In this document: positions 2,337 to 47,677 of the stretch, in pieces | Position numbering within the stretch: position 1 is the stretch's first letter | How the letters are laid out: each line of letters opens with the position of its first letter | DNA from: Eukaryota sp. TZLM1-RC | Taxonomy: Eukaryota; Protista; Metamonada: BaSk clade | DNA: 64,000 nt | Assembly: GCA_040285825.1 (NCBI GenBank) | Contig: JAUPSS010000009.1 | Location: 124,001-188,000 of the forward strand | Reading direction: 5' to 3' | The notes under the pieces: generated by a model | The model's input: only the letters and a program-made list of their open reading frames with translations | What the model was told of the DNA's origin: nothing | Database searches by the model: none | Translations under genes and position numbers: made by a program

Positions 2337-2404
2337 AAAACAGTGAATCTGGCGTGAAATGACATAGGAATGTTAACATTGCTCTAAAAATGTGCAGGGT
2401 TACC
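2337..2404 (+). pseudogene. Fanzor family D C-terminal remnant (Zn finger end/RuvC-III)
   Basis: AAAACAGTGAATCTGGCG...ATAGG..TGTTAACA.TGCTCTAAA.ATGT.CAGG.TTAC aligns by eye with 39174-39240, which encodes QNSECGVYWDRVVNSALNMYRIT. Confidence 0.55.
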
Positions 2405-2572
2405 CACTTTCGTATTCATGATGTTTATAGAACAGACATACTACAAAGGTGTGTGAGAGTGGAGAAAAAAGTGAAGAACATTAGTTGTTAATCAATTAAT
2501 TAGTCAGCATGGATTGAAACATAAACTTTTTTTGAGTTACCAATAAACAATTTACTAAAACCACAACACAAG

Positions 2573-12987: not shown

Positions 12988-14317
12988 ATGTCTTCGTTCA
13001 ACACACACCATACCATGGCTCTCACTCTGTTTAACTTTTTGGTTGGTGATCCTCAAAGGTACAACACTCTTCTTTCTTCTCGAAGAGTGACCCTGAATCA
13101 AAGGAACAGTACCTACATCTTTCGTTGCGGCTTAACAATCCAAAACCACCTGGAGCAAGCCTTAGCACATACCTTTAGACGACATAGACTCACCCCCATC
13201 ACTAGTTTGAAGCCTGCTTTTGTCCCCTTTTCCATAGGGGTTCTCAACCATTTTATCTCCAAAAACACAAACAATTTTGAAAAACCCATATTTATTTTTT
13301 AGAACAAAAGCTAATGACTACACCATGTCTTCTAATGGTGATAGTGTCCGTATAACTTGCAAACCGCACCCCAAAGCAACAGGAGTGAGATTGTCTGGAG
13401 AAGCATTGGCTGATAAGAGATTCAGAGGGTAACTTGATTACTACGAAACCACTCGGAATAGAAAACATACCTTGCAAGCCAAGGTTGAACGGCTAGGACC
13501 TCGCCAGAAACCAAAAGCTACTGAGTGGCAGGCACCTGATGATGAAACGGAAATGGTGTTCTGGGCCATCGACCCCAACCACTCAAATCTATGTGGTTCC
13601 AGCATTGTAACACGTTCAGGGCCGACCGTTTCCAATATCTTCTTGGCACCAAAGCAACGAAAAATCAATCACTCCGCTTCACTGACCCACTCATCAATAG
13701 ATGTTTATGACGTGCAGAAATTGAATTATTATCTGCTTGAAATATCAACTATCGGTGACTATAAGGACTATGAAGGTAATAACGTAAGACGATCATTGCT
13801 AAAGCAGCAATTATATCTGAGTGCTCGAAAAGAATTGAGGAGAAACACAATTGACTTCTTTATAAGAAAACAGAGAAGATTCAGCTCAATTATCAAACAA
13901 AGTGAAAAAATTGCAGACGGTCGAGAAGTAAAGGTGTGGTTTGGCAATGGAGGTGGTTGTCCATCATGTCAAAATGTGAAAACACCACGTAAGGCGTTTC
14001 TCAAGTTGTTACAATGTTGATTTGCTAATGTGAAGATCGGAGATGAATATATGACATCTGCAAAGGTGAAATGCTGCAAGATGCTACACCAAAAGATCTA
14101 TCGAGAAATTGATGGTGAAGTTAAAGTTCACAACTCCTATTTCAGTTGTCCGGAATGTAATCAAGTTTGGTCTAGAGACATTTCTGCATCACTAAATCAG
14201 CTAGAAATTGCAATTAGTGAGCACTACTATGGAACAAGACCAGAAGCGTTCCAGAGACGACAAATGAAACTAGCTTCAAAGCTACGTATTGTTCTAGAGG
14301 AGAAATGGGCTCACTGA
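12988..14317 (+). pseudogene. Fanzor1 family B, disrupted
   Basis: HRLTPITSLKPAFVPF (WED-like), WAIDPN (RuvC-I), VWFGNGG, GDEYMTSAKVKCC (RuvC-II Glu), CPECNQVWSRDISASLN (Zn finger/RuvC-III), RPEAFQR. Frameshift near 13300 and an in-frame TGA at 14018-14020. Confidence 0.8.
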
Positions 14318-14519
14318 GATTGGTGACCAATTATTCGAGGATTCTAGAACGTCTGTGGACGATTTCACCAAGGATGAAAGTTCTTGGAATAAGTTTGAAT
14401 GATACTTGAAGAATGTATGCATTTCTAAATGAAAACTACAGACTCGGAACTTCCAAAAAACTCAACCTCTACATTGGTGTAAAGGACATCTATTTCATTG
14501 TTATAGACAACATCTGTGA

Positions 14520-15026
14520 ATGGAAATTCTACCTATTCCGTCCTTGGAACCGTTTTCTATCAAAAACAGCTTCTCTATTCGTATATACAACTCTTGCTTC
14601 TCTCTACCCAATCTTTTGGTGGGTTCATTTGGTAAGTGTAGACCATCACCAATTTCTGCTCTCAGTTTTTGTCGCTGTATTGTTAAATTTGCAAATTCTG
14701 AAGTCCTGCTCAATTTCTGGTTTGGCAATGACTCTGATAAATCTCATACATATGATCTGGATATACATTGTATACCAGTCACATCAAGGAGCACATTCAG
14801 TAAGTTTCAACAGAAAACTTCACCAACATTATTGCTTATTACTCATGTAGATAATTGGATAGAAGCACAAGTGACAAAACAAGAGATTGAGCAGTTGAAA
14901 GCTCAAGACGGGCTTTCTGTATTGTATATGGCCATTGGAGATGGGATCACTGATGAGGATGACTTTTTTAATAAAAGAAATGAGGTGGTTACACATGTTT
15001 TGGATGTTTTAAACCTAAATCCCTGA
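14520..15026 (+). CDS. Hypothetical protein, possibly a degenerate Rho/Ras-like fold
   Basis: DIHCIPVTSRSTFS, PTLLLITHVD and VTKQEIEQL resemble the small-GTPase C-terminal half. P-loop and DxxG are absent, and the upstream frame has TGA stops. Confidence 0.3.
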   Translation: MEILPIPSLEPFSIKNSFSIRIYNSCFSLPNLLVGSFGKCRPSPISALSFCRCIVKFANSEVLLNFWFGNDSDKSHTYDLDIHCIPVTSRSTFSKFQQKTSPTLLLITHVDNWIEAQVTKQEIEQLKAQDGLSVLYMAIGDGITDEDDFFNKRNEVVTHVLDVLNLNP

Positions 15027-15525: not shown

Positions 15526-16765
15526 CAAATTAGAAATTAGCAAACTAAAAATAAATAAACGATCTACATCAACAGAAACAATATTCAATTTTGAACTAAT
15601 GGATTGAAAACGGTACCACCTACTTTAGTAAGATTGCAGTTAACGAATTCCAGGTTGGAATTGTTCAATTCAACATGACCAGTTGAATGTGAATCCAGTA
15701 CATCAACATTAGTAAAGGTAACATCTGTATTGTTAATACCAGCAGGAGTTGTGGACAAATGACCAATCAGTCAGGAATCAGCCAAAGCAAATTCTGAATT
15801 ATTAACAGTAAAAAATTGATTTTATCATTGTCTAACAATCATTGTGAAGGCTAACAAAGCTGTCTTTGCTCATTCTTTGAATCCATTTAAACAATTGAAA
15901 ATACTCCATTGATTTAATTCCTTTATTTAAATTTTTATTAATAGATTTATTTAATATACAGTTAATTCTTCTAAAATAATAATACAAAAAACTAACTCAA
16001 TAACAACGCCGTTCCTGCAAGCCTCCACTTAGAAGCTGGAGCTCTGGTACGAGTAAAACGTCCAAACAAAAGTAGGACCCTTAATGGATGTTGAATTAAC
16101 AGGACACTCGAAAAATTCCTTGGTGGTTTGGGTTCGTTTATCCAAGGTCGTGGACTTTAAATAAAACACTGGAACTTCATCCAAAAGTACCTGAAGTTTT
16201 GATTCAGCGAGACAACCAGCTTGAACATCCCATCTTGCTCCTTATGAAAGACCATGAATATAAGTTCCTTCACGGGGAGGAAGGAGCAGTAATATCTGAG
16301 ACTTTCTTCTTTGTAACATCAGTTTAAATAGGTATAAGGTAAAAATGGATCAAAGATGAGTAAAAAACACGGACAAAAAGTACAGGGGGAGTCCTAAAGC
16401 TCGGAAAAGTAGGTAAGTGAGGGAAATAAGAACCTAGTTTATGAATTTGGCAGAGTCTAACAGAAGAGAAAAGTTCGATTGTGAAAAGGCGACGTAAAAG
16501 AGGAATGGACATATAGGAAGAGAGTGGTGGGGTTTAGTTAATAGGTCTGAAAGAATGGAATTTCCTTTCGAAAGTTTGGAATGGAGTTCAGTAAGTTCAG
16601 AACAATTCTGATCATAAGATTTTAGAAGTTCATGCATATAAGTGTAGGTTAGACTGGTGTAGGTGAGGAGGTTGGCAATGAGAACATCTTCTATGGAGGA
16701 AAGATGAGTAGAAAGAGTGTGAAGTAGAAAAATAGGGTTATAATAAGAACCAGATCCTAGTTTAT

Positions 16766-16865
16766 GAAGTGAGGGGAAAGTGTGGGAATAGTGAAAACCT
16801 CCCAAAGCCAAGTTGAGGATTGAAAACCTACCAGAACAGACAACCAGAAGTCGAAAATGGGGTGA
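16766..16865 (+). repeat. Conserved upstream (left-end/promoter) block of Fanzor family A
   Basis: About 100 bp, roughly 90% identical by eye to 23610-23708, with the internal repeat AAAACCT(C/A)CCA. Confidence 0.8.
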
Positions 16866-17590
16866 TATCCCCATTAATCAATTATTATCAAAAGAAACAT
16901 GTATTTGTTCGAATTCACCTCAACTCACTTTGCGCCATGCTCTGAATTGCTCTAAATTGATAATTTATCGTTCTTCATTACATGATGCTGTTAGAGACAC
17001 TGTTTTCAATATGGCACAAACTGCAAGGATATCGTGTATCAAAGAGCCCCTGCTGAAGGAAACACTTTCTCTGAATAATTTTGGTTCTGATGATAGAGGT
17101 GATGTATACTGTGATTGGATTGATAATTCTGAAGCTATTGTTGACTTTGTCTCATGTAATGTTGCAAATGATACTTTGGTTCAAAGAAGAAAACTTAATC
17201 CTGTGGCTGCTCTGGATTTTAAAGCAAAAGAGAAACATAGAAAATATGATAAAGATATTGAAGAGGCTAATGTCGATAGAAATACACAGCTGGTTTTTAT
17301 TGCTTTCCCATTTTCGATAAATGGAAGATTATCAGTTGAAGCAGAAACTTTTTTTGGATGACTTCCAGAAAATGGTGCAAGAAAAAACTATGAAAAGATT
17401 TGATAGTTTTTATGGCGTTCACGGATTCAATTTGCCATTATTAATAGATTACCACGGTTTTTCAATCGAATAAGAGAAGCTTTAGCTAGACAGCAAGCAG
17501 ATCAAGATTTTGTAGAGGAAATCTTGGTTCAATGATAGTCGCCCCATTAGTATTGAGTTAATTTAATTAAGTGTACAAATTCAATAAATA
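16865..17590 (+). mobile_element. 5'-truncated RLE retrotransposon family 1
   Basis: CICSNSPQLTLRHALNC (CCHC-like knuckle), HDAVRD, RGDVYC, IVDFV, KEKHRKY, then the family 3' UTR. Confidence 0.85.
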
Positions 17591-17809
17591 AGAATGAAGT
17601 TCTTTGTTCAGAATTGACAAATTTTGGGTAAACTTGTCATAACATTAAATGCTAATTGACGAGCCCAACAAGCAAGGTCAGGAGAAAGTCCTTTTCTATT
17701 AATAAAATTGCATCTCTGTGACTGTAGCCATTCATTGAGGAAAATATTGAATGAATTTCTACAAGGAACTAGAGAAGTTTCCCATGAAGAAACAAGAGAC
17801 CTGTCTTGT
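17591..17809 (-). pseudogene. Inverted N-terminal fragment of Fanzor family A
   Basis: The reverse complement aligns with 24061-24279 (about 80% by eye) and reads ..ACA AAG AAC TTC ATT.., supplying the base missing at 24265-24269. Confidence 0.85.
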
Positions 17810-18061
17810 GCTTTCAGAAAATGGTTGTGTTATCAAAAGGACGTGAAGCACTTACCAACCAGTGAATTTAATACAAGCAAACTGTCCAGTTGTTGCAAGG
17901 CCGAGAATATTCAAGCAGGCTCATGGCAGATGCGTATTTGTACTGAGTGTCAAACAGTATATGACAGAGATATTTCCGCTGCAAAGAATATTCAAATTAA
18001 GAAGAAAGCGGAATTGTGGCCTGAAAGATACATTTGCCCAGAAGCTCTGTTGAGGAGATGA
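17810..18061 (+). pseudogene. 5'-truncated Fanzor family A (RuvC-II to C-terminus)
   Basis: Nearly identical to 25453-25704 (AFRKWLCYQKD...DRDISAAKNI...EALLRR*). Confidence 0.9.
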
Positions 18062-18157
18062 GTGGGGAACCTGAGCATACAGAAACAAAAACTTTGGAAA
18101 AACTGATATTTTATTTTGAGTTTTTTATTTTATTTTTGATTTTTTTGAAAAACTTTT

Positions 18158-18380
18158 GAGACCGATCCACAAATACCTTAGTAGCATTTGGTAGATCCAC
18201 TTAGATACATGAAGTCGCGAGGCTTTGTTCTGTAAAAGCAGTAGGTGTATTTAAGTGAGGTAGCTCATTGATGAATATCATGATTGTCTTTGTCAAAAGA
18301 TGCTACATGTCTCGTACAGTCTGTGAGTAGACATTGAGAAAGTTGAAAACAGGAGTGAATTTCACAGGGAATGCATGATA
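18158..18380 (+). ncRNA. Putative Fanzor A omegaRNA scaffold, copy 2
   Basis: Conserved with 25801-26024 and has the same stem-loops. Homology ends sharply after ATGCATGATA. Confidence 0.65.
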
Positions 18381-18438: not shown

Positions 18439-20046
18439 ATGTTCTATCACTACAAGGCCCTCTGTCGCCTTGCTCTGACAGGAGTTGTTTTCGCTATCTT
18501 CTTGACGTTCAATCAACCCAACAATCATAATCAAGCTCTCTTCTTCCTGAAGGATTCACCCGACGAGTGTGTTCCTCCATCAAACCCAGAACACCAATGT
18601 TATTATGTCACTTCTACCGATGCATGTACTTCTATTCCAGAGTTGATCGATTATCTCAAACTCTATTATTGTCATTTAAGCACTAAGCCTTTAATTCTCA
18701 ATATAGTTTTCTTCTCTACCATATTACTGTTGTTATTCTCCCTACTGTCCGGAACTGCAGAAAAATACTTTGTCCCTGTGCTGGAACAACTTGTTGATGT
18801 CTTTAAAATGTCATCCGATCTTGCTTCTGTCACTCTACTCGCTGTTGCCAACGGTGGTCCTGATATTGCTTCCCAGATAGGTTCACTCAATTCAAATGAG
18901 GTCGCTATGGCCTTGGGATCTGTTCTCGGGGCTGGTTTGTTTGTTATTCTTATAGTACTGGGTGCTATCATTATCGTTGTCAAGCCCAAACAGAATGACG
19001 TGATCATTACAAGGATTCCGTTTTGTCGAAATGTTGGATTTTACTTACTCTCCCTTGTATTTCTTGCTTATTTGGTTTATAAACAGAAAGTTTATCTAAT
19101 TGAAGCTTTGTTTTTCCCTTCTCTTTATGGTGTCTATGTTCTAGTTGTTTTACTTTCAAACCGACGCAAGAAAAGGTCTGTCCTTCTGAATGTTCAAGAC
19201 GACGAAGATTCTGAACTTGGTTCTGTTCTCCTAGAGGAACAGTTTTCTACTCAAATCAACCATCCAAAAACCCCTCTGTTTCCCTCTTTTAAATGGGAGG
19301 ATAAGTCTTTTTTTGAAAAAATTGGTTATGTTTTGGAGTTTCCGTTGACAATATTGAGAAATATATCTATTCCAATTGTTTCATCTGAAAATCCTTCCTT
19401 GTTTCTCAATGGAATTGCACCAATTGGTTTTGTTTTCTTGGGGCCTTTTGTTGTTACTCACAGCATTTCTGTTTTCCAATCTGCGAAATTTCTTGCTATA
19501 CTGGTTCTCACTGTTGGTTTTTGCGTTTGGAGCGTTGTTGACTCTAAGCATCGTTCAATACCACGGCCTAGATCACTCTGGTGTCTCCTGGCCCTTGTTA
19601 GCTCATGTCTATGGCTCTTTGTCAGTGCTGACGAGTTGGTTTCGCTTCTCCGTTCACTGGGAATCATTCTCCATATTCCTGCTTCAGTACTAGGCTTTAC
19701 GGTTCTTGCCTTTGGTAATTCCGCTGCTGACCTTGTAGCGAATGTTTTTGTGAGTAAAAACGACATCAATCTTGGAATCGGCGCTGTGTTTTCTGGTCCT
19801 GTTCTCAATCTCCTCTTGGGGACTGGGGTGGCCATCATTCCCCTCTGTGCCAAGGAGGGCTTTGTGTTGAATGTTGATTCGTCCATTGTATTTACAGTTG
19901 TTTTTATTATTGTCTGTTGTTGTTTTATTTTGTTGCTGTTTGTATTGTTTAAATTCAAACCTCCTTTATTTGTTGGTGTGGTTCTCTTAGTATTTTATGC
20001 CGTTTATGTTTCCGTTGCAATGTTTTTAGGTCTTGATAGTTCTTGA
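18439..20046 (+). CDS. Cation/Ca2+ exchanger, CCX/NCLX-like
   Basis: N-terminal C..C.YV....C...IDYLKLYYC, alpha-1 VTLLAVANGGPD, alpha-2 TVLAFGNSAADLVAN, GPVLNLLLG. Confidence 0.9.
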   Translation: MFYHYKALCRLALTGVVFAIFLTFNQPNNHNQALFFLKDSPDECVPPSNPEHQCYYVTSTDACTSIPELIDYLKLYYCHLSTKPLILNIVFFSTILLLLFSLLSGTAEKYFVPVLEQLVDVFKMSSDLASVTLLAVANGGPDIASQIGSLNSNEVAMALGSVLGAGLFVILIVLGAIIIVVKPKQNDVIITRIPFCRNVGFYLLSLVFLAYLVYKQKVYLIEALFFPSLYGVYVLVVLLSNRRKKRSVLLNVQDDEDSELGSVLLEEQFSTQINHPKTPLFPSFKWEDKSFFEKIGYVLEFPLTILRNISIPIVSSENPSLFLNGIAPIGFVFLGPFVVTHSISVFQSAKFLAILVLTVGFCVWSVVDSKHRSIPRPRSLWCLLALVSSCLWLFVSADELVSLLRSLGIILHIPASVLGFTVLAFGNSAADLVANVFVSKNDINLGIGAVFSGPVLNLLLGTGVAIIPLCAKEGFVLNVDSSIVFTVVFIIVCCCFILLLFVLFKFKPPLFVGVVLLVFYAVYVSVAMFLGLDSS

Positions 20047-23186: not shown

Positions 23187-23493
23187 TATTTACATTTTGG
23201 TTAAGTTGTGATATGTGCGCATCATGAGAGTGTAGAGACGACAGAGCAAGGGAAAGAGAGGACTGTAGTTGAGATTCAATTGAGGTAAGTTCTGCATTGA
23301 TATCATGGCGAAGGTCATTGAGATCAGAACGAAGCGAGAACGCATTTGAAACCTTCTGGAGTGTGTCTGGAGCGAAAAATACATCACTTACTTGTGGAAG
23401 AGGAAGATTATGTGATTTGCAGTAGTTTTGATAAGTAGTGATTGTGTGTTTAAGCTGAATCACCTTGGTTTGTAAAGAATTGAGTTTAGACAT
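23187..23493 (-). CDS. Divergent coiled-coil ORF head-to-head with Fanzor A, 3'-truncated by the RLE insertion
   Basis: The first ~102 aa of track ORF 22219-23493 (MSKLNSLQTK...QLNQNVNK) are unrelated to the RLE. A compositionally similar ORF lies left of the other copy of the upstream block (16434-16765). Confidence 0.4.
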
Positions 23494-23609
23494 CGGCTAA
23501 TAACACAAAACGTCAAACAGTGGTAACCTGTTGAGATTGATGGAGGACGTGGATAAAATGAACTGAGATGCTGAACTACTCAGTTGGAGAATTCTTACAA
23601 AGTAAATGG

Positions 23610-23708
23610 AAAGTGAGGGGAAAGTGTGGGAATAGTGAAAACCTCCCAAAACCAAGTTGAGGGTTAAAAACCTCCCAGAATAGGCAACCAGAAGTCGAAA
23701 ATGGGTGA
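23610..23708 (+). repeat. Conserved upstream block of Fanzor family A
   Basis: Second copy at 16766-16865. It ends about 40 nt before the Fanzor ATG. Confidence 0.8.
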
Positions 23709-23749
23709 CAAGTGTAAAATTTGATAGATGAGCTCTTTATTCTCACTAC

Positions 23750-25704
23750 ATGACAGACACCCCCTCTGTATCACGTGTATTCACTCGGTCTTGTGCACTT
23801 AACTCGCTGCTGACCCCTGCAGCGGTGCAACAAATTCGGACTGACCTTCCTGTGGTCACCGAGATTTGTCATGAAGCGTCTTTATTACTTCAATCTTTTC
23901 TTCTAAATTTTCCGTTGGCATCAAGAGCTTTGTTGGAACAGGATGTATGGTATCTGTTTATGACCGTCATCACCACTGGTTCTTTTCCAAAGCCTTCCAC
24001 ATCTAAAGGCCAACGCCAATTACTCCATATCTTTTACAATGGATTTCTTCCTGAATGCCCACAAGACAGGTCTCTTGTTTCTGTGTGGGAAAATTCTTTA
24101 GTGCCTTACAGAAATTCATTCAATCTTTTCCTCAATGATTGGCTGCAGTCCCAGAACTGTAATTTTATCAATAGAAAAGGGCTTTCTTCTTATCTTGCCT
24201 GTCGTGCTCGTCAATTGGCCTCCAACGTTAAGACATGTTTACCCAAAATTTGTCAATCCTGGACAAAAACTTTATTCGTGCTCATTGTAGAGCCCTGAAT
24301 AAAACAAATGTCTTTGCAAATAATATTCTTTCACTTTTTGCCAGATGAACTACTAGCCCAACCCGAGGAAGTAGTAGTTGATTCTGTTCTTGAATACCTC
24401 ATCAATTTCAATTTGAATAATTCAAGAGAAAGATTTTTTTATTGAATGCATGTAGGTTTATCTTGAATCTCTTTCAAAGATTTCCTACCACTGCCTCCCT
24501 ACTGTCCTCACATGATAAAATCACTTTTTCATCAAAGGAAATTAGTGAGCTTTTTCTCTTCAATCTTAAAATTTCACAATACTTACTCACTTTCTTTTCT
24601 CATATGCATTGCTGGAAGAAATTTAGAATAATACCTTTAGCTTCTCATAAAGGTTCTAAATTTATTGAGGTACCTTCACAAATTTTCCAATCTGTGAAAA
24701 AATTTCCAATTATTGAAGGATCATCTTCCAAAACAAAGTTTATCAAAAATACATGTCTGAAACGAGTATTCAAACAATGTCCTTACCAAAAATTCAATAT
24801 CAACAGAAAAAGTTTGAAAAATAGATTTAACAAAATTTTATTGAAAACTAATGGTAATGAACTGCTTTTGACCTTTGAAGGTAAAAATAATGACTCAGAA
24901 AACACAGATGAGCTGGATGAACCACCGAAAAAGAAAAGAAGATCAAAAAGTGAAATGAAAAGTGACCCTAATGCCAACAAAACCAGAGAAACACAGTTGA
25001 AGGGTACTAAAAAAATGCCCCGTCGAAGACGTAGACATCCAGTCGAAATTTTACCTGAAAGCCCCCTTATCGGCGTTGATCTTGGCCAATCAAGATTATG
25101 TGGTTACTTCTTAAATGATAATCAATGTGGAGTTATCCCTTGTCCAACTGGCAGAAGATACATGACAAAAAATTCACCCAGTAAACACTCTCCCAACCAA
25201 TATTCCGTTCAAAATTTCAACCAATATTTGAACCATTGGAATTTGGTCAGGAGGAAAGTGTATTTGGAAAGTAATCGCCAGAAATGGAAAATAATTAAAT
25301 TTGATAACCGCAGACGAAAAGAGAGACGGTTCAGAGAGAGTCTCAACAAATTTCAAAGTCTGGCTGGACATCCTGAAAAACTCTATCTTGCTGTGGGTTC
25401 TGCTAATTTCCCTTCTCATTGCCGAAAAGTCAATCGATATGGATCAGCAAGGGCTTTCAGAAAATGGTTGTGTTATCAAAAGGACGTGAAGCACTTGTCA
25501 ACCAGTGAATTTAATACAAGCAAAATGTCAAGTTGTTGCAAGGCCGAGAATATTCAAGCAGGCTCATGGCAGATGCGTATTTGTACTGAGTGTCAAACAG
25601 TATATGACAGAGATATTTCCGCTGCAAAGAATATTCAAATTAAGAAAAAAGCGGAATTGTGGCCTGAAAGATACATTTGCCCAGAAGCTCTGTTGAGGAG
25701 ATGA
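23750..25704 (+). CDS. Fanzor1 (TnpB-like RNA-guided RuvC endonuclease), family A; ~651 aa after correcting three homopolymer indels
   Basis: FRIIPL..SKFIEV (WED-like), NLS-like PPKKKRR and PRRRRR, LIGVDLG (Asp 25078), LAVGSA, TSEFNTSK (rearranged Glu 25507), SCC..CTEC Zn finger, DRDISAAKNI (Asp 25612). Frame breaks at A5 24265, T5 24335 and T7 24434. Confidence 0.88.
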
Positions 25705-25800
25705 GTGGGGAACCTGAGCATACAGAAGCAAAAACTTTGGAAAAACTTATATTTTATTTTGAGTTTTTTATTTGATTTTTGATTTTATTGAAAAACTTTT

Positions 25801-26024
25801 GAGACCGATCTACAAATACCTTAGTAGCATTTGGTAGATCCACTTAGATACATCAAGTCGCGAGGCTTTGTTCTGTAAATGCAGTAGGTGTATTTAAGTG
25901 AGGTAGCCCATTGATGAAGATCATGATTGTCTTTGTCAAATGATGCTACATGTCTCTTACAGCCTGTGAGTAGACATTGAGAAAGTTGAAAACAGGAGTG
26001 AATTTCACAGAGGAATGCATGATA
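25801..26024 (+). ncRNA. Putative Fanzor A omegaRNA scaffold, copy 1
   Basis: Stems: GATCTAC 25807/GTAGATC 25834; CACTTAGATACATC 25841/GGTGTATTTAAGTG 25887 (14 bp with two G-U pairs, so plus-strand RNA); GTAGC 25903/GCTAC 25945; ATGTCT 25950/AGACAT 25972. Conserved at 18158-18380. Confidence 0.7.
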
Positions 26025-26110
26025 AGTGAAATTCACAGTAGTACTTCCACAACTGCTTTCCCACCATTCATCCCACACTAATTTCATTGTGATAGACATT
26101 ATCTGTAACA

Positions 26111-28789
26111 ATGGATGTCTTGACTGCCAGACTTACAGCTTTCCGATATGTACTTGAAGAAGAACGTTCTGACTGGGCTAATCTCATTTCCAAAGAGTTT
26201 AATGAGTTACGTGAAGAAGTCATCACTAAACTTGATACAATCAGTTCCTTCAAACTTGAACAACTATCTCCAACTCAAGTGCGTCTCTATTTGCCCCCTG
26301 ATTCTATTGAACTTAGGCAGTACATTCTCTCTCTTGAACGATACAAGTCTGAACATGGTACCCTCCTCTCCAAGCTTAATGACCTCACTCAGTTCTCCAA
26401 CGATAGCTCCAATAAGCTAGAAGAGTTTAGATCCAAACATCATTTACTTTTAAACCGAACAGTAGCCCTTGAACGCGAAGTTGAACGACATAAACGTGCC
26501 GAGGAAAGATATGAGCAGAAGATCAAATCATTGAGCAGCAATGCTATGAAACTGGTAGCTGGGCTCCCAAAGCAAAGAATCACGGAACTGGAGGAAGAGT
26601 TGAAGAGTAATAGTGAATATATTAAGAAAATAGAAAAGGAATTTTCTGGAATGTGTTGTTTGGTACAAGAGAAGACCAATTTAGTTCGTGATTTAGAAGA
26701 AAAGAATTCTTCGCTTATATCTTCCAAATTAAGCTTGGAAAACGAGTTGGAATCAACTAGGAAAGAATTAAATGCCTCTGAAGGAAGAATTTCCGAAGTT
26801 TCTGATATTAATTTGAAATTGATCAAGGAAAATGCTGATTTAAATGATAAAACTGGTGAACTGAATGAAATGATCCAAAATTTGAGTAATGATAACCAAA
26901 TTTTGAACAAAGAGCTCAGTCAACTCAAGTCAAGATCAGAATCTTTTGAAGAGAAGTTGAGTGAATTATCAAGCGAAAATACTTTTTTGCTAGATGAATT
27001 AAACCATGCTAATACGAGCTTATCTCAGTTAAAAGCAGAAAGTGAAACGTGCTTGATGACCTCTGCTGACGTGGAATCCCGACTACAATCAATTAATTTT
27101 GATAGAAGTCAAGTTGATCAATTCAAACAGCAAGTATCCTCACTCAAAAAGGAAGTTAAGCAGAAAACTACTTTGGCAAAGAAAAATGGCGGGAAAGTTG
27201 TTAATTTAGAGAAACAAATAGCTGATCTTGAATCTAAATTAGACAGTGAAAAAGAAATGACTTTTGATTTAAAAGAAAAGCTTGATATTGTGAATCATGA
27301 GCTGGAAATTTATAAAAGAGAAGTCAACAATCTTGAATTAAATAATGAAGAATTGAGCGAAATGTTATCAAAATCAAGAGTTGAGGTTACTTCCATTAAT
27401 ATTAGGTCAAAGGAACTGGATTCTGAGAACAAAGAGCTCAAAAATGAAAATTTGAAGTTGTCAGACAACCTTACACTTCTTCAATCCAACTACAACTCGT
27501 TGGTTTCAAGGGAGAATGCGCTCAAATTCGCTTTAAAACATTTGGAAGCTGAACTAGGGTCTCCTAAAACCTTATTTTTTGCTGAATTAAATACCAATTT
27601 AGAGAAACAATTAATGGGAGCAAATGATTATTATTCTAAACAGGTGGTTTTAATTGAAGATCAGAAAGAATCAATTGCTGAGTTGTCGAGTGTTAATCAA
27701 AAAATAATGGCTCAAAATCATACATTAATCAACAATCAAATGACTGACCGGTCAACAATCAAACAGTTACAATCGGCAGCTACTGGATTAGAAAGGAAAC
27801 TGGAATTGTTTCTCACGAATAAGTCAAACAATCAAAATAGCAATCAACAGTCCCAGCCAGTCAGAAACACTTTGACTCTTCAAGAAATCACGTCATCAAA
27901 CGTGCTTAACTCTTTGTTAAACACTTGTAGCGAGTTGAAAAAGGAAGATTCAATCGAAACTGCTTTGATTACCCTCAATTATACCATGGTTTCTCTCCAA
28001 GATCAGCTTGTGAATCAACAGAATAATGAGAGTTACGAGATGATGGTGTTCAAAATGAAAGAATCGCTTGAAGGAGCAGAAGTTGCAATTTCTTCTCTAT
28101 CAAATAAGCTCAGTGTTGCTGATGAATTGAACTCTATGTTAGAGAATGATTTAAATTCTATGAAGTTGGAGCATAAGCGACTTCTGGATCACTTGTATTC
28201 AAGGTTTAAGAAGACTGTAGCCCAGTACTCTAGCAAGTTTAATGAGGTTTCTCACTCAAATTTTGAACTTCTACGGGAAAACTATAGGTTAACAAACATT
28301 TTTGAAATGTCAATGCATGACGTTAATAGTGGAATCGACCTCAGTAGCTCTCAATTTGACTTGCTCAAAAGAGTCTTTGCTGAATTTAATGAATTATCTA
28401 CGGTGCTAAGCTCAAATGATGCTATTAGAAAGCAAAATATAGCCAAGTTTAGTCGAAGTATCCACAGATTGGAGGCTGAAAATAAACAACTAAGGGAAGA
28501 AATCACTTCTTTGACAGACAGAAACACGGCTTCTACGTCGCTTCATGAGCACAGAGCTGGCCTTTTGAAAACATTGAGGATTAACTATCGTTCATTACAA
28601 GCTGATTTCGATACATTAAAGCAAGAACAAGCTTGGTTGGTCCGGGAAAATGAACGCCTTTTGGGAGAAAAGGCTCAATTTGATGATCTTTTCCTTCGAA
28701 TCATTAGAAAGAGTCATGGTAGTATTCAAGGTTTGCTTGAGGAGTTGAAAGCTTTACGACAAAAATTTTGTACAGATAAGCATAATTAA
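26111..28789 (+). CDS. Long coiled-coil protein of unknown function (892 aa)
   Basis: Uninterrupted ORF, E/K/L/N-rich heptads, no catalytic motif recognised. Confidence 0.85.
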   Translation: MDVLTARLTAFRYVLEEERSDWANLISKEFNELREEVITKLDTISSFKLEQLSPTQVRLYLPPDSIELRQYILSLERYKSEHGTLLSKLNDLTQFSNDSSNKLEEFRSKHHLLLNRTVALEREVERHKRAEERYEQKIKSLSSNAMKLVAGLPKQRITELEEELKSNSEYIKKIEKEFSGMCCLVQEKTNLVRDLEEKNSSLISSKLSLENELESTRKELNASEGRISEVSDINLKLIKENADLNDKTGELNEMIQNLSNDNQILNKELSQLKSRSESFEEKLSELSSENTFLLDELNHANTSLSQLKAESETCLMTSADVESRLQSINFDRSQVDQFKQQVSSLKKEVKQKTTLAKKNGGKVVNLEKQIADLESKLDSEKEMTFDLKEKLDIVNHELEIYKREVNNLELNNEELSEMLSKSRVEVTSINIRSKELDSENKELKNENLKLSDNLTLLQSNYNSLVSRENALKFALKHLEAELGSPKTLFFAELNTNLEKQLMGANDYYSKQVVLIEDQKESIAELSSVNQKIMAQNHTLINNQMTDRSTIKQLQSAATGLERKLELFLTNKSNNQNSNQQSQPVRNTLTLQEITSSNVLNSLLNTCSELKKEDSIETALITLNYTMVSLQDQLVNQQNNESYEMMVFKMKESLEGAEVAISSLSNKLSVADELNSMLENDLNSMKLEHKRLLDHLYSRFKKTVAQYSSKFNEVSHSNFELLRENYRLTNIFEMSMHDVNSGIDLSSSQFDLLKRVFAEFNELSTVLSSNDAIRKQNIAKFSRSIHRLEAENKQLREEITSLTDRNTASTSLHEHRAGLLKTLRINYRSLQADFDTLKQEQAWLVRENERLLGEKAQFDDLFLRIIRKSHGSIQGLLEELKALRQKFCTDKHN

Positions 28790-32840: not shown

Positions 32841-33419
32841 ATTGAGGACTATGAAATCAACAAGCTCAATGACCCCGTTGATGACCCGACTCACCCCTAT
32901 GTACTCCGACACAGGAAGAAATCAGGAATCCTGACTTCCGTCCGAGAACTATACTAGACCAACTGCTGATGAATGGAGATCGCCGAGCCCTGAGCCGCAA
33001 CAAGTTTGATTTTTTTTATAAGAAGGCAAAAAAGGATAATGGGATTAATTGAAAAAATTAAACTAATGGCTAATGGAAGAGAAACCATAATTTAATTTGG
33101 TAGTGGAGGTGATGGGCCATCAAGACAAGCTGTGAAAACCCCAAGGAAGCGCTTTTTGAAGGAAATTCAGAAACATTTTACATATGTGAAGCCTAATGGA
33201 GATGAATTCTACACATCTGCCAAAACGAATTGCTGTAAGGTATTCAATCAAAAGTTGTATCACGATGATGGGAGGGTGAACAATGATAAGTTTGTATGCC
33301 CTCAATGTAGGACACTCTAGTCGAGGGACATCTCGGCTTCCAGAAACCAACTGGAGATTGCCATAAATGAGCACTACCACAATGAAAGACCTGAGGCCTT
33401 CCGGAGACCCCGTAGATAA
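32840..33419 (+). pseudogene. Fanzor family B C-terminal remnant
   Basis: DFFIRRQK, FGSGG, KTPRKRFLK, GDEFYTSAKTNCC, CPQC...SRDISASRNQLEIAI..RPEAFRRPRR*, colinear with 13750-14260. Confidence 0.85.
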
Positions 33420-33576
33420 GTGCTTTTCCATGTATTGCGTACCTGTACGCGTATTGTGATGTTGCTGCTTTAACTATCATTTGATCGTGATATCATATAG
33501 TGATAGATCTAAAGTATGCTTAACGTCTATCAAGATTGCATGAATTGGTCAAAAGCCGGAAGTGCGTTTTGATAGA
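33420..33576 (+). ncRNA. Putative Fanzor B omegaRNA scaffold
   Basis: Stems GCGTAC/GTACGC, CTATCATT/AGTGATAG, and terminal TCTATCAAGA 33526/TTTTGATAGA 33567, directly after the Fanzor stop. Single copy in the window. Confidence 0.45.
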
Positions 33577-33622
33577 AATTCACAGTACTAATTTTCCTTT
33601 ATACCCTTAGTATTTTTCTTAC

Positions 33623-38899: not shown

Positions 38900-39253
38900 T
38901 TAACATCTTTGGGGTCTATGTAGTCAAAAGCTTTATACTACTTCCCTGACGAAGACAAATGATGAGTTATTTGTGCTGAGCAACAGAAGAATAAGAACAT
39001 TATAGTTGAAAATGCTGATCTGATCATGAGAAGACAGCGTTTGGCAAATTGATTTTGAGAATGGATTATTATTAGATGTAAGTTCCTCGTTGGAATGAAT
39101 TAAAATGTTAAAAAATGGGATCTAAAAAAAGATGATGTCAAACTAATCCCATGCCAGGGACTGCTACACTGTCAAAACAGTGAATGTGGCGTCTATTGGG
39201 ATAGGGTTGTTAACAGTGCTCTAAACATGTACAGGATTACGTACTCTACGATA
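38900..39253 (+). pseudogene. Fanzor1 family D C-terminal remnant
   Basis: IPCQGLLHCQNSECGVYWDRVVNSALNMYRI matches the Fanzor1 pattern HGLLxCxNxxC...WNRDxNAAxNI (catalytic Asp is Val here). Confidence 0.7.
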
Positions 39254-39326
39254 AGTGAAATTCACAGCAGTTGGGAAGAAGTCTAAATTGTCAATCTTCG
39301 GTCACAACTCTATTCACAACCCTACA

Positions 39327-39956: not shown

Positions 39957-40013
39957 ATAAACTGTACCTGATAATAACTACCTTGTTAAACTCAACAATA
40001 ACTTTGCAACACA

Positions 40014-40829
40014 TTAATTAAATACAAGCAATTGTTTAACTAAAAGCTCCAACACCGACCCACTGATGGTTCTCGATTTATCAGTGATAGTAAAGCAGAA
40101 AGAATGTGCATTTGGGCGAGGATCAACATCACCAATCTTAACCCCTGCTTCCACGAAAGTTTTGTCAGAAATCATTCCCCTGATTGTTCCATCACAAGAA
40201 GAGTGGACATCTTGTTCACCTACTGTGGCCACAATCTCGCCAATCACGCAATGATCTCCAATTTTCTTGAGAGGTAGGACCTCCCCAGATACTGGTGCTT
40301 TCAACAACCTCTCAAATGTCCTTGAGCCAATTTCTCCAGGAACACCTGTATTTGGTAATGCAGATCCTTTTTCAATTATCCTTCCTAAATCATGTCCCCT
40401 ACAGGTCTCAATAACATAGTGGCAGTCTGTGCCAGCCACAAAACCAGGACCTAAACCAATAGTCAGAGGTGCAAGGTCCATATTCAAACCATTGTTACCT
40501 TTTTTTGTCATCATAGCATCAACAATAGCTATAGGCTTCAACGTCTCCATCAACTGCGATGTGATAATGGGCTGAACCAGTAATGCAACATTACCGGAAG
40601 AAACAACAGGATGAACATCAGATAAGGAACGAGCTAATTTTGCAGGAACCCCTTCAATGATATGTTTGGCATCACCAGAATATAGGAGTGATGCAAAGGA
40701 AATGGTTGTTCGAACACATAAAGGAGTTGCAATTTCCAAGCAGACAACACGTACCTTGACGTTAAACAAGCGAACAGCTATGGCAGATGCCAGTTCCCCT
40801 GCACCCCGTATTACAACTAGATGTGACAT
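40014..40829 (-). CDS. yqeB: YqeB-family selenium-dependent molybdenum hydroxylase system protein
   Basis: VIRGAGELASAIAVRL, VDAMMTKK, IGLGPGFVAG.DCHYVIETCRGHDLGR, PNTGVPG, G.IRG, KIGDVDPR, TITDKSRTISGSVLE. Confidence 0.88.
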   Translation of the reverse strand: MSHLVVIRGAGELASAIAVRLFNVKVRVVCLEIATPLCVRTTISFASLLYSGDAKHIIEGVPAKLARSLSDVHPVVSSGNVALLVQPIITSQLMETLKPIAIVDAMMTKKGNNGLNMDLAPLTIGLGPGFVAGTDCHYVIETCRGHDLGRIIEKGSALPNTGVPGEIGSRTFERLLKAPVSGEVLPLKKIGDHCVIGEIVATVGEQDVHSSCDGTIRGMISDKTFVEAGVKIGDVDPRPNAHSFCFTITDKSRTISGSVLELLVKQLLVFN

Positions 40830-41652
40830 CAACAAGTGAAAAAATCATTCATTAATTGAATTTCAATTTAACCACATTTTTTGGGTTCGCCTTAAACTCT
40901 TGGCTCGGTAGCCATTAATCCATCTGGTCAGTTCAGCACCTCGGTTCGTTTCATTAATATCAAACCGCTGTTTTTCTCCTCCCTCCTTATACTATTAAAC
41001 TATCTAGCAACCAACAAAGAAAATTTTTATTTAGAATGATCTAAAACACCTAAATATAGGTCATTAACTTGACCAATTACTCTATTTTATCAGGTTAATG
41101 ACAAACATCCTCGAAAATTGAGGTAAAAGGGAAGAGATTTCCGTGTGAATACATATTTCTAAACAAATAGATAGTTGAAACAGGCATTTGGGAAAACGTT
41201 TTCGAACAGAACCTTGATGCCACGTGTAAATTAAGAAAAATGAGTTCGGTCAAACGTTCGAAAGGGTTGCGAATGTCCAGAATTCTAACATTGAATTCAA
41301 ACAATCTTTTCGTTATCTTCATATTCCAAATCCACCACAAATTATTGACTTAAAGTTTATTATAAAGCTATCCGAGAGATAACCCTGTAGAAGACAATAA
41401 TTGAACAACAACTTTAGTAATTGAAAATCAACTCCGTATCGACCAAAGTAAGTGTCCCTGGAAAACTCCACATCATGACGAGCTTATCAAAGTATATGAT
41501 GAGAAAACGTCTCTTTCTCCGAGACAGATATGATTCGTACACAAACGGCTGGTTATCCTTGATGATAGGGAAAAGTCTAGTCAGCTAGCTGATGGTTTGA
41601 GCGATATATAGTGTAATCAAACTATTCTAATTCTTTAAAAATATGACAATGT

Positions 41653-42375
41653 TTATTCTCTGGGATTTCGTTGAGGCCTTATATCGATTCTTGTTGGACA
41701 AGATCTTCCAGACCACTGCAAAAGATTCTGTATTAAGCAAGCAATGTCACTTGGATCAATTGCTTTTGAAACATCCAGATTTGTTCTGGAGCTGATCATG
41801 GGAGTGTCTACGTACCCGGGCAGTATCGATGTAACCTTAACACCTTCATTCCTGAGATCCTCAAAGATTGATTCTAAGAAACCCTGGAGTCCATGTTTGC
41901 TTGCACAATAAGCAAATGTTTTGGGATGAGTATGTACCCCCGATTGGGAGGATATTGCAAAGATATGTCTCTGCGATTCAGACGCTAAAAGCAAAGGTAC
42001 AGCCAATTTGGTGAGTCTCATAACTGAAAGAAGATTGACATTCATTACGTGTTCCACCTCATCCATGTCACATTCTGGAGAGAGAATATCTGAATTCATA
42101 CTGACACCAGCATTGTGGACGAGAACATTAAGTCGACCTGATTGAGAGCGAACAATGTTAACTGCACGAGATATATCATCTGCACTGCTGAGATCAACGA
42201 TTACTACATGTACTGAAACATTGGGGTTAGCTGCTATACACATGTTCTTTGTCTCTTTTAGACGTTCTTCATTTCTAGCCAACAAATAGATAGTAGCAGA
42301 TTGAGGGGCAAGCCCAATAGCGATAGAGCGTCCTATTCCTGAAGAAGCACCAGTAACTAAACATACAAGATCCAT
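41653..42375 (-). CDS. Classical short-chain dehydrogenase/reductase
   Basis: TGASSGIG, HNAG, YCASK, PGYVDT. Confidence 0.93.
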   Translation of the reverse strand: MDLVCLVTGASSGIGRSIAIGLAPQSATIYLLARNEERLKETKNMCIAANPNVSVHVVIVDLSSADDISRAVNIVRSQSGRLNVLVHNAGVSMNSDILSPECDMDEVEHVMNVNLLSVMRLTKLAVPLLLASESQRHIFAISSQSGVHTHPKTFAYCASKHGLQGFLESIFEDLRNEGVKVTSILPGYVDTPMISSRTNLDVSKAIDPSDIACLIQNLLQWSGRSCPTRIDIRPQRNPRE

Positions 42376-43335
42376 TGTACACTGTAAACACACTAAATAC
42401 AATAATAAGATTCACTTTTATTCATAGCGTCAGATTAAGTAATTTTAGTAATCTAATTTAAAAGTTTTAGTCAATCCAGTAATCTAAAGCTATACTTTTG
42501 ACTATGCTTTTGTGATGTGAAAATCACACCTTTGAAATTCAAAATTAATAAATTTCAAAGCACAATAAAGAAAGCCAATATTTCTAGTGTACAATTAATC
42601 ACTTTTTTCAAGCAACTGTTTTAGTTAAATTATACATCACCATAGTGCAAGTCATGACAAAGCAGTCACACCCATAAAGAATATAAAACTACGTAATTTC
42701 ATTATGGTGTGTTAGAGGTTTTTCTCAACAAATTCGGAATTTTTTTAGCAATTTTTCGTAGTAATTCTAGAGGGATCAGCAGTAACCAACATAATTACTC
42801 AATTTGCAGTAGCCCCCGGTCAATACTGAAACACTGTAATCCAAAGTTGAGATAAAACCTCTGTGCTTGATTGTGTGATAATTTTTAATGATGATCTTGT
42901 ACACTGCTGTAATTAATTGGTCTTCAAAAAATCTATACACTGCTTCCCGCTGTAAAAGTTATGATGTTGAAAAGTGGTTTATCCTAACTTGTTCTTGTTC
43001 CATAGTTGAGATGGTAATCGTCCAGCAACCAACCAGTTCTCAGTTCTTGAAGTTACTAGGAAGCATGTTAGGAACAACACACCGCTCAAACTTTAATTCT
43101 AAAACGGTGTTATCTGCAACGGTATGTAAGAAATACTGAGAATTATCACAACAAGAAGTGGATTAAAACAATTAAAGAAGGAAAAAAATTTTATTTACAA
43201 GGCTGGAAGTTGAAACTTGGAATGGTTCTACAAAAACCAAGTTTATTCGATTCTCCCAAAACAAAGACGTTCATTAGATGAAAATAAAATGATCGTCGAT
43301 CCAATCCAATTATTGAAATTGAAATTAAGATTGAA

Positions 43336-46300
43336 TCAACTTCCGCGAGTGAAAAGTCTAATCAAACTGGCCCAGATAGTGAAAATCATCGAAAAGGCAC
43401 CAGCAATAACAGAATCCGCTCCACTCTTGCCCTTACCAAGCAATTCCAAGACATCATCCACGTCAGAAATCATAGTCCTGAACCTTCCAAGTAGGGAAAA
43501 ACTCTTGATTAGGTTCAAAACATGGGTACTGTTAGGGGAGTAATGAAGACCCGCTTGGACTGGAATATTAGAAAAAGCTTCAAACGGCTTGAAGTAGATA
43601 TGATAGTGATAAATGCCAAAACTGTTGATTAATTGAGAAAAAGAGCGTTCAGAGAAGACCTTTACCATTCCTCTAGCCACATTACGTCTTGGAATCCAGG
43701 AAAAATCCAATACTACCGAAGAAACCTTTAAATGCGAAATCAGCAACGGGTTAGATGAAGACGGAGATCCAGAAGATCCAGAAGACATGCTAATTGACCT
43801 ATAAAATGAAAGAAAGAACTCAACAACATCACTGTTTACTTTCAGAGTCATACATGCCATATTCACGCTTAGAGAGAGCTGTTTTTGCTCAAAAAGCGAC
43901 AGAACAACTTCAGTACTTAGAGCAACATCTTCGGCAGGAGAAACCAAATTGAAAATTTCAACAGCTGAACCTGAAATTTTTGACTGAGCTGCAATTGATT
44001 TGCACTGAAAAAGGGTTTGAATACTTGAAGTTTTTGTGGGTGCTAGAGGTATCAATGCTCGAAATTGAGGAGAAGTCACAGTCAGAATTATGTAATCATC
44101 AAACGAAAAAGATTGGTTGCCGAAAAAGGGAATTCCTTTTATCAGAGAGCACAAGGGAGGAACCTCGGGTCCACAGCAACCCCTAATGCAAATTGAAATA
44201 GAATGAACCTTGATATTGACTGCCAGGCAATTTTCTGTTAGTTTGTAAATTTTCGACTGATGATCCCTTCTCGATCTTAGTAAATAGCAATCGTCAATCA
44301 AATTTGATAGCTGAGAATGATCGGCAGAAAGAGCTAATGTATAATCAGAATTAGAAAGTCTTGAAGATTCCTGGCGAATTAGATCAGGAATATCTTGTAT
44401 AAGCGACCTTAAAGATTGATCCGGAACAGACTTGCTATCATTAAAGAAGGGGGTATTGTTGAAAGGCTCAATAATTGGTGGGTCAAAAATTTCATCATCT
44501 GATGTCGAATTTGACCCTTTGCTACCGATTTGGGAAACTATTTTGTCAATCAAATTGATAGATTCCGCAGATGAGTCTATATAGACCTGAGAAGTTGACT
44601 CTAAAGACTTGACCATCCATCCATGATTGAGAGCCAAAAAGGAAAGTTCCATTCCTGACAACGAACAGACAATTTTGAACGAATCATCCACCAGTTTAGC
44701 AAGAACATTGGATTCATCATTAGGAGGGCTTTCAGAGCAATCATAGGTCAAAAAATCACATGATTTCAACAAAATTCCCAAAGAGGAAAGAATAGCATTG
44801 ACTGTAACTAATTCCACATCATCATTGTGAGAAAGGTTCAAAATGAAACGTGATCCTTCAATCAAAAAAGATAGACAACATTTATCTGAACCGATGGTGG
44901 CATTTTGACAGGCGTAGCAGTCAACAATGATTACATCAAGGTCAATATTAGCAGGAGGCACGTCAGCAACTGTTAATTCTGGTCCATCCATGGTGAACCA
45001 CTGAAGGGGTCCTTGGTTATGGAAAAGGGAGTCCAAAAGAGTGGAGAATTGAGATAATTCAGGTGGTACTATACTGAGATTAGACAAACGCAATCTAATT
45101 TGATTGGAATCAGAAACGGAAATAGTGCAAAATGGCTGAAATGTGCTTGATTGATCAGAAAAGGACTCGATTATTTTAAACACCTCTGCAAAACATGGTC
45201 CATCATTTTCAATCAAAGGTGACGAGGTGTTTTGACCTGATAACGTTGGTTTCCGGGGCGAGCTTGGTGGAGAGACAAACTGATCCAAGTCCGAAATCTC
45301 TGAGCACATGGATGCACAGGAAGAAGATGGTGAAGAAGGTTCAAAGAGATCAAATCTAGCTGAGGAAAAAACTTGACAATTCTGAATTATGCCAAACAAA
45401 TTAACAAATGTTGATTGGCAAACTTTTAAATCAATTGGATAAAGATTAACTAATAAATAAGAGTAAAAATGTCCAATTTTGAACTTGAAACTGCTGATAT
45501 TAATAGAAATCAGAGTGTTTAACGACGTGTTTTGTTCAATGTTCTGACCTTCAGAAGAATTTGATTGACTAATTGATTGAATAATCTCTTGGTAATATTT
45601 CCATGAAAATTTCAATGGAATGACAAGATCAACAGTTAAAACAGCATTAATTAAGTGTAGAAATTTCGAAAAAGCGCTACCATTAAATTGATTAATACTA
45701 ATTTCCATATCTTTGCAATAAATTTCGATCTTTAAATTGTTGTTATTCTTAAAAAAATCTTGCTGCAGCATGATTCCATGTAAATCTGTCTCAAATTGTG
45801 CTTTTGGAGGAGCTGAATCAAAATTTTGAGCAGTTACAGGTCCCTCCTTCGAAAAGATCTTGTCAGGAGGAAATTTTGGAGGAAGGATTCCTTGTGATCC
45901 CTTTTCGTTGGTTGTTTCAATAATGATATTCAGAGGTAATTTGGAAAAAAAAAGAGTCGCATCACACATAGAATTTTCAAGAGACAGGCCAATTGACAAG
46001 TCAAGATCAATAGAGCTCATCAAAATTTCGCTTTTTGCTAATAAATTTTCAATCAATACAAGGGCATTTCTATTTAAAGAATTAGGAGAACTTAAAAAAA
46101 TAGAAATCTGGTTTACACATATTTCGAATTTTTTAAATTTTGAACTCTCAATTGACTCTTGGTAGTGTTGACCTTCCTTGACTTTTGATTGATTATTGAC
46201 CCAGTTAAATAAACGTGATCTTAGGGCATAATCAAAAAGGCTTTGTATTAAGTTGGAATAAACCTGAAAAGAGCGAAGAATTTCAACTGTCAGAAAAGTC

Positions 46301-47406: not shown

Positions 47407-47677
47407 ATACTGAATGTGAAGATTAGCAAGTTGCGAAAAGTAGTTTATCTTTTCACTTTGGCCTCAAATGAATGAGTGGAATCTCCACAAAATGATTGAA
47501 AAAGATATCAAAGGTTTTGGAGCCTAACAATGCTCTTCACCATTCCAACTCAAAAGGTATTCTTGGAAATTGATTCAAATTCGTCAATCAATTTCAAAAT
47601 TAATTAAGAAGTAGTTAATATTGAAATTAATGTCATCCAAAGTATTTCACTCAAACAAAAAGATACATTCACCAGAT

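Follow-up and report, generated by a model that had tools for sequence, protein, structure and literature searches.

Nearly the same motif follows several Fanzor 3' ends that lie just upstream of host start codons in the 64,000-nt stretch of contig JAUPSS010000009.1 (GCA_040285825.1) analysed here and referred to as the window, and the question raised by this locus is whether the motif belongs to the host promoters or to the elements themselves. The genome is that of Eukaryota sp. TZLM1-RC, which we take to be Skoliomonas litria, a metamonad; together with GEM-RC1 and TZLM3-RCL, it is presumably one of the Skoliomonas isolates, free-living anaerobic metamonads, and the papers found agree with this assignment. 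A sequence-only reading of the window had interpreted the motif as promoter DNA read by the Fanzor as its guide, with a second target in the same window; if true, this would mean a Fanzor regulating, or homing to, many promoters.

The strings behind that interpretation occur at the places given for them, namely GATAAGTGAAATTCACAGTAGT at 26021, GATAAGTGAAATTCACAGCAGT at 39250 and GATAGAAATTCACAGTA at 33571 (the motif is also given as the string GTGAAATTCACAG), and GTGAAWTTCACAG is found four times in the window against 0.37 expected, a count that 0 of 100 shuffles reached. Regarding the four Fanzor ends attributed to three families, they are co-oriented with real ORFs and precede their start codons by 37-72 nt: the ORFs encode CCX, a Na/Ca exchanger (58 nt to ATG 18439), an 892-aa coiled-coil protein (72 nt to ATG 26111), a CUE protein (37 nt to ATG 33623) and a p24/GOLD protein (59 nt to ATG 39327). 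The part of the claim that did not stand concerns the ends themselves: that of family A had been placed 14 nt too early, and the one at 39253 is not the end of a family-D element.

The family-A element and its boundaries

All the close homologues of the family-A protein (80-98% identity) are in Eukaryota sp. TZLM1-RC, where a single cluster at 90% identity comprises 82 members; a full-length family-A protein, model P0025, has 651 aa. GEM-RC1 (60% identity) and TZLM3-RCL (33% identity) have more remote relatives, the divergence of the TZLM3-RCL one being too high for a comparison at the DNA level. The ORF at 24442-25704 matched Pfam PF07282 (zinc-finger TNB, Cas12f1-like) with E = 1.7e-7 and 31.8 bits, the cut-off being 26.3, and the same domain is found on the family-A homologues of this genome. 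In the translation, GVDLG (RuvC motif I) and YDRDISAAKNI (motif III) are visible and the motif II glutamate was not placed; a search of solved structures gave a weak, C-terminal match in which motif III aligns to a Cas12m structure. From these signatures, the protein appears to be a very divergent Fanzor/TnpB-like nuclease, whose recognisable part is the C-terminal TNB/RuvC-III region alone.

The copies compared come from nine 21-kb loci of the same genome (L numbers below), fetched via nine different protein models; these loci hold ten further family-A copies, picked without regard to their neighbours, so that n = 12 with the two copies of the window. The counts given for motifs and guides refer to 285 kb of searched sequence. 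The features that define the element in the window are:

23611 to 26038, plus strand: family-A copy 2, 5'-truncated, covering about 1200-3571 of the full-length element (BLAST against L008:7453-11023, 98.7-99.2%)
16753 to 18380, plus strand: family-A copy 1, rearranged, with another repeat inside, an inverted segment and a right end shorter by 14 nt
26025 to 26038, plus strand: last 14 nt of the element, AGTGAAATTCACAG, right terminal inverted repeat and predicted 3' arm of a hairpin
26039 to 26040, no strand: TA target-site duplication at the right end, with matching dinucleotides in 5/5 copies
23197 to 23608, plus strand: paralogous empty site in another repeat's copy, where a single TA joins the two flanks of the L008 insertion without interruption

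As for the right end, AGTGAAATTCACAG follows GATA in 11 of the 12 family-A copies, the flanks of which are otherwise unrelated; L007 and L009 have single-base variants in the terminus, L006 has a small internal deletion, and the flanks diverge only past CACAG followed by TA (ten copies) or TT (one copy). The sole copy devoid of the 14 nt is the one at 18380, which stops at GATA: it is a 14-nt 3' truncation, because window positions 18148-18380 correspond to positions 3324-3557 of the 3571 in the element. Between the two 3' regions of the window (17810-18380 and 25453-26024) identity is 97%, and it breaks off after ...GCATGATA. On the right, family A ends at 26038 (CACAG), and not with the GATA at 26024; contigs, DNA-like, from three public runs (X1-X3) leave the window behind 26040, 26041 and 26043, with one exit at 26027 and zero at 26024. 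The sequence-only reading had itself held that an extension common to most family-A copies would speak against a guide, and this is what 11 of the 12 copies have.

The left end, seen in five copies, reads C(T/A)GTGGTTGAATTT..., with GTGTGG... in L009. A 2-bp target-site duplication matches on both sides in all five two-ended copies, being TA/TA in four of them and TT/TT in one. A paralogous empty site preserves the state before insertion: window 23197-23598 is 99% identical to the 402 nt that precede the L008 copy on its left side (L008:7052-7453), and the window then runs on as TACAAAGTAAAT, which is L008 from 11024, directly past CACAG. The empty site is ...TTCTTA-CAAAGTAAAT, with a single TA and without the motif, and the filled site is ...TTCTTA, the element, and TACAAAGTAAAT. 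Together, the shared extension, the duplications, the left ends, the empty site and the run contigs define the element as CTGTGG...CACAG, 3571 bp. It is found at full length at L008:7453-11023, from 5'-CTGTGGTTGAATTT... to ...GATAAGTGAAATTCACAG-3', and its termini are short imperfect inverted repeats, CTGTG/CACAG plus AATTT (5 + 5 nt, with a 4-nt gap/offset).

Other candidate boundaries were rejected. The L003 copy seemed to end at ...AGTGAAATTCA, but a 2.1-kb nested repeat splits its terminus, the remainder of which is at 14312; TTCACAGTA at L003:14318, considered as a promoter copy free of Fanzor, is the second half of this split terminus. Likewise, AAGTGAGGGG at 23611 is not the left end of the element, as it lies inside the complete sequence, at about position 1200.

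The copies also differ in their internal structure. The repeat nested in the terminal palindrome of the L003 copy (L003:12215-14324) is accompanied by a duplication of about 11-12 bp (AAGTGAAATTCA), and its family is also present at window 1487-2090, 16865-17590 and 49240-49948. Five copies (window 16753, window 23611, L001:9820, L004:2923 on the minus strand and L007:8673) are left-truncated at a near-identical point, element positions 1159-1203, near ...CCTAGTTTATG/AAGTGAGGGG, and this common point could be a deletion hotspot or the sign of a second, shorter form of the element. A 61-nt AT-rich stretch after the Fanzor stop (25729-25791) is missing from L001 and from the X1 and X3 contigs; it is an indel polymorphism between copies, located upstream of the structured region. 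In L004:520-580 (minus strand), the right-end string TTCACAGTATTTAA is repeated 25 nt onward in the flank, perhaps left over from a previous insertion at this site.

Regarding the coding content, Pfam detected no DDE transposase in the few ORFs scanned, which were the MJ1316 ORF, two Fanzor N-terminal ones and those of neighbouring repeats. The left part of the full-length element carries an ORF opposite in strand to Fanzor, with an MJ1316 domain (RNA cyclic-end recognition; PF04457, E = 1.5e-11), and such ORFs are found at L002:9277-9522, L005:9373-9795, L006:9371-9793 and L009:8516-8938, all on the minus strand. The presence of an RNA-end-binding domain alongside an RNA-guided nuclease may go beyond the mere capture of a fragment.

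The termini at the family-B and family-D sites

The other two sites of the window that bear the motif are described by these features:

33003 to 33585, plus strand: decayed 3' part of Fanzor B (tblastn and translation), with stop codons in the CDS
39140 to 39251, plus strand: C-terminal coding remnant of a D-type Fanzor, with zinc finger and RuvC-III, ...CQNSECGVYWDRVVNSALNMY...
39250 to 39267, plus strand: 18 nt identical to the end of family A, GATAAGTGAAATTCACAG, attached to the D remnant, with CA next; the p24 ATG is 59 nt further on

Family B has a structured 3' region of its own (fold z = -3.5) and ends with GATAGAAATTCACAG, followed by TA at 33586-33587; its last ~50 nt align loosely to the family-A terminal hairpin. 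On this alignment, B is a separate family with a diverged terminus, homologous to that of family A. A fifth Fanzor remnant of the window, at 13472-14440, is related to B (50% over 56 aa); it lies co-oriented and directly upstream of ATG 14520, which bears the host palindromic motif described in the next section.

The D-type remnant is 90% identical at the DNA level to L003:1782-1879. In the other D-like copies (L003 from 1782 on, window from 2337 on) the sequence at this point is CATATCCATGAAATTTGCAG... and the coding part continues for ~130 nt; the continuation reads ...SHIHEICRPRVL..., and the relatives P0034-P0039 continue with ...RP.(Y/L)L. Compared with L003, the remnant of the window is 90% identical over the 104 nt before the junction and ~60% over the next 20 nt, and past the junction it matches the family-A terminus at 18/18 positions, even in GATAAGT, which is poorly conserved; microhomology is available at the junction in the native D sequence, ATGAAATTTGCAG. 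The simplest reading is that the junction at 39251 joins a D coding remnant to an A-type terminus, an event that would have occurred via an internal deletion or recombination. As the motif is the element's own last 14 nt, neither the predicted guide nor its second target can be upheld: the 14-nt seed match reported in the p24 promoter is one transposon terminus matching another.

Searching representative sequences with the 48-aa D peptide gave seven relatives, with E from 1e-6 to 1e-4, and the CACAG terminus is absent from the sole D-like locus fetched from TZLM3-RCL. In this locus (L012), genes with DNA_pol_B_exo1 and DUF8286 domains (L012:2837-7101) are directly upstream of, and co-oriented with, the D-like Fanzor; L002, which holds Fanzor sequence as well, has both domains in one gene (L002:2219-5245).

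Right ends and the genes downstream

Six of the ten independent right ends are co-oriented with the next gene and located 89, 93, 99, 103, 120 and 123 nt before its ATG; three are co-oriented but distant (543, 630 and 1304 nt), and one more faces the 3' end of a gene. These positions were compared with a null in which a randomly oriented element falls in random non-genic DNA of the nine loci, family-A copies removed. A co-oriented location within 125 nt of the ATG, observed in 6/10 copies, has a frequency of 0.07 under this null (p ~2e-5), which is crude because unannotated repeat remnants were counted as available intergenic DNA. Co-orientation with the next gene (9/10 against 0.69 under the null, p = 0.13) is not significant. 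The placement of right ends just upstream of co-oriented ATGs, already pointed out from the window, was thus confirmed, and the promoter-proximal position is clearly real in this ten-copy sample; its cause may lie in a preference at integration, in selection, or in an input of the right end to transcription.

The right ends found 37-123 nt before ATGs would result from insertion, or persistence, at the gene-proximal edge of the 5' intergenic DNA, and the likeliest cause would be a preference for open promoter DNA followed by selection. It is possible, but improbable, that closeness to the ATG instead involves no preference and simply follows from the short intergenic regions of a compact genome. 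Many spacers of the fetched loci do measure 40-400 bp, and four of the twelve copies have no ATG nearby or point at the 3' end of a gene; yet the non-genic DNA consists mostly of long, repeat-filled stretches, in which the observed frequency of gene-edge copies is not expected under the null reported above.

The sequence that does recur at start codons is a different one, as listed here:

26085 to 26113, plus strand: host palindromic motif CATTGTGATAGACATTATCTGTAACAATG, abutting the start codon; the same motif precedes ~10 unrelated genes
Window 26071-26113 and 14482-14522; L003:14408-14450 and 18688-18730 (minus strand); L005:12288-12330: host palindrome
L004:7630-7673 and 14342 (minus strand); L006:5020-5061 and 13888 (minus strand); L003:3542 (degenerate): further host palindromes

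This host palindrome is ~29-42 nt long, (AAGGACACTTATTT)CATTGTTATAGACAATATCTGTAACAATG, and has the form CATTGTTATAGACA...TAACAATG, in which the 3' arm TAACAATG includes the ATG. It abuts the ATG in ~10 of 75 unrelated genes, occurs at genes with and without a Fanzor neighbour, and follows, in intact form, the insertions at 26111, L003:14448 and L005:12328; at the gene edge, the element would have its sites on the upstream side of this motif and leave it whole. The palindrome may be a core-promoter or initiator element in this metamonad and, since it directly abuts the ATG, very short 5' leaders are implied. The recurrent host promoter motif thus differs from the motif of the Fanzor ends. The latter had been proposed to be a host promoter motif too, but the 11 exact matches of GAAATTCACAG in the 285 kb are all Fanzor termini, and the motif was found in 0 of ~75 other upstream regions inspected, at genes without Fanzor.

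These data also bear on whether the terminus has been co-opted, that is, whether the right end gives promoter or enhancer activity to the downstream gene. Such co-option would explain why the right end faces the ATG in all the promoter-proximal copies (6/6 independent ones and the four of the window), and it is an unlikely explanation: the distance between end and ATG varies between 37 and 123 nt, another conserved host motif adjoins the ATG, also at Fanzor-free genes, and the orientation bias does not reach significance. Co-option is not suggested by the promoters themselves, given that the palindrome abutting the ATGs is a different one and stays intact downstream of the insertions.

Family A might have a directional integration preference for the region ~60-125 nt upstream of ATGs, so that guides are taken from core-promoter DNA and element and promoter are coupled, but this is a speculative proposal that we regard as rather doubtful. 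If true, the natural guides (15-20 nt past the terminus) would systematically be core-promoter DNA, and the coupling could consist, for instance, of read-through or of a transcriptional input from the right end. Promoter-proximal integration is known from Hermes, which inserts in nucleosome-free regions, and from P elements. Family A is like them in that insertions are enriched just upstream of genes, and unlike them in that what is seen is the end result in one genome, where preference and post-insertion selection are inseparable.

Regarding the arrangement of the window as a whole, its host ORFs form long same-strand runs, plus over ~7.9-40 kb, minus over 40-49 kb and then plus again (7900-40000, 40000-49100 and 50900-62500), and all five Fanzor remnants are on the plus strand, within the first plus run.

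The terminal hairpin, the predicted guide and related systems

The features that concern the RNA are the following:

25795 to 26038, plus strand: structured 3' non-coding region, omegaRNA-like (fold -74.5 kcal/mol, z = -4.6, equalled by 0/200 shuffles)
25998 to 26008, plus strand: 5' arm of the terminal hairpin, GTGAATTTCAC, pairing with 26026-26036 in single-sequence and consensus folds
26041 to 26060, plus strand: corrected predicted guide GTACTTCCACAACTGC..., in the variable host flank past the terminus, by analogy with SpuFz1; unique in the 285 kb

The terminal 14 nt are predicted to pair with the internal GTGAATTTCAC and to close a hairpin of 11 bp, formed by GTGAATTTCAC (25998-26008) and GTGAAATTCAC (26026-26036), with which the ~240-nt conserved, omegaRNA-like region would end. 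The string AGTGAATTTCACAG, reported inside the scaffold of family A, is indeed present at 25997 and 18354, where its role would be that of the hairpin 5' arm. In the GEM-RC1 orthologue, which has ~70% DNA identity, ~240 nt are conserved from the stop codon on and end exactly at GAAATTCACAG followed by TA; GATA, which lies in the hairpin loop, is lost, and the stretch that bears it is the least conserved part of the region. The rule that all the ends finish in GATA was incidental. Of the 11 hairpin pairs, one is compensatory in GEM-RC1 (C-G to U-A), and four pairs of the omegaRNA-like region are kept via double-sided changes; Rfam returned no match for the 3' region 25795-26038. A conserved, structured RNA that reaches the right end is a hallmark of Fanzor/TnpB systems, and it is present here as predicted from fold and conservation.

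In SpuFz1, the omegaRNA scaffold extends across the 3' IR, and the variable 14-15 nt past the conserved end serve as guide (PMC10432273); in a second study, the Fanzor RNA overlaps the IRR/TIR (PMC10530073). By the SpuFz1 precedent, AGTGAAATTCACAG would be scaffold, which would span the terminal repeat, and any predicted guide would begin at ~26039-26041, in variable host DNA. For the guides corrected in this way (16 nt from, or after, the duplication), a second match with up to 2 mismatches is absent from the 285 kb. As for the TAM, there is no basis for GATA, which had been put forward in this role. The bases outside the left end are ATTA, ATTA, CTTA, TTTA and TATT in the five copies, and in SpuFz1 the CATA TAM has its counterpart in a CA outside the left repeat (PMC10432273); by this analogy, a T-rich TAM ending with TTA would be a better guess than GATA.

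A different role for the motif would be that of a fixed internal guide, with the scaffold stopping at GATA and 14-16 nt encoded by the element itself directed at the termini of siblings (self or kin). It would suit a terminal motif that is invariant in A, B, the D remnant and the GEM-RC1 orthologue, and is preceded by GATA in A and in the D remnant; it is nonetheless very improbable, because the motif pairs with the internal arm, with one compensatory change, as expected of a structural stem and not of a free guide, because characterised Fanzors use the variable sequence past the IR as guide (PMC10432273), and because an element whose guide matches its own gene would destroy itself. Even less credible is the original proposal, in which a host promoter motif is the insertion site, the flanking AGTGAAATTCACAG the guide, GATA a TAM-like sequence and the p24 promoter a second target: the motif does follow GATA at three window sites upstream of ATGs, and the 18380 copy does stop at GATA without it, but the 14 nt are common to copies with unrelated flanks, including those 543, 630 and 1304 nt from an ATG and the one facing a 3' end, they are absent from the empty site and from the ~75 Fanzor-free upstream regions, and the sister species GEM-RC1 keeps them and not GATA.

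It is very probable, instead, that the explanation built on the element's own end is correct as a whole, with the motif as transposon end and hairpin arm, the guide beyond it, the B terminus homologous, the D site fused, and insertion or persistence at gene edges; that the motif could be a shared terminus had been the alternative offered by the sequence-only reading, and it was right. In this explanation, the 14 nt of AGTGAAATTCACAG are the end of a non-autonomous, cut-and-paste transposon of 3.57 kb, which bears the family-A Fanzor gene.

This element can be compared with known systems. In IS200/IS605 TnpB elements such as ISDra2, the omegaRNA is encoded at the right end: its scaffold lies within the element, the adjacent flank supplies the guide, and there are neither inverted termini nor a target-site duplication. 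Family A shares with them a guide RNA, here predicted, encoded at the right end, and differs by its 2-bp duplication and its CTGTG/CACAG termini. An association of Fanzor with non-autonomous, TA-duplicating (Tc1/mariner-like) DNA transposons has been reported (PMC10530073): like these carriers, the family-A element has a TA duplication, termini of the CAGTG/CTGTG type and, in the ORFs scanned, no transposase gene, whereas its inverted repeats are much shorter than is usual for Tc1/mariner, and the scan yielded neither a matching autonomous element nor a DDE transposase.

The closest parallel in organisation is Spu-1/SpuFz1 of Spizellomyces punctatus, in which the Fanzor ORF is between terminal inverted repeats (Saito et al. 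2023, PMC10432273). Family A likewise has the Fanzor ORF between inverted termini, a conserved non-coding region from the stop codon through the 3' repeat, a variable (here predicted) guide past the conserved end, bases flanking the left repeat on its outer side that are conserved and related to the TAM (here by analogy), and many partial, decayed copies. The differences regard the size of the element (3.57 kb here and 2.1 kb in Spu-1), the extra MJ1316-domain ORF in its left part, the inverted termini (~5 + 5 nt against 30 nt) and the scaffold-like region (~240 nt against 75 nt); in addition, the host here is a metamonad, the protein is very divergent, and the system is known from sequence alone.

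In conclusion, the family-A element is a Fanzor-bearing DNA transposon of an ordinary kind, previously undescribed and abundant in a free-living metamonad; the literature search found no paper on both Fanzor and metamonads. The analysis gives the exact boundaries, the target-site duplication and the terminal hairpin of this element, and it relocates the places where guides and TAM may be sought, the left flanks reading NTTA. Finally, it reveals a measurable enrichment of its insertions just upstream of genes.
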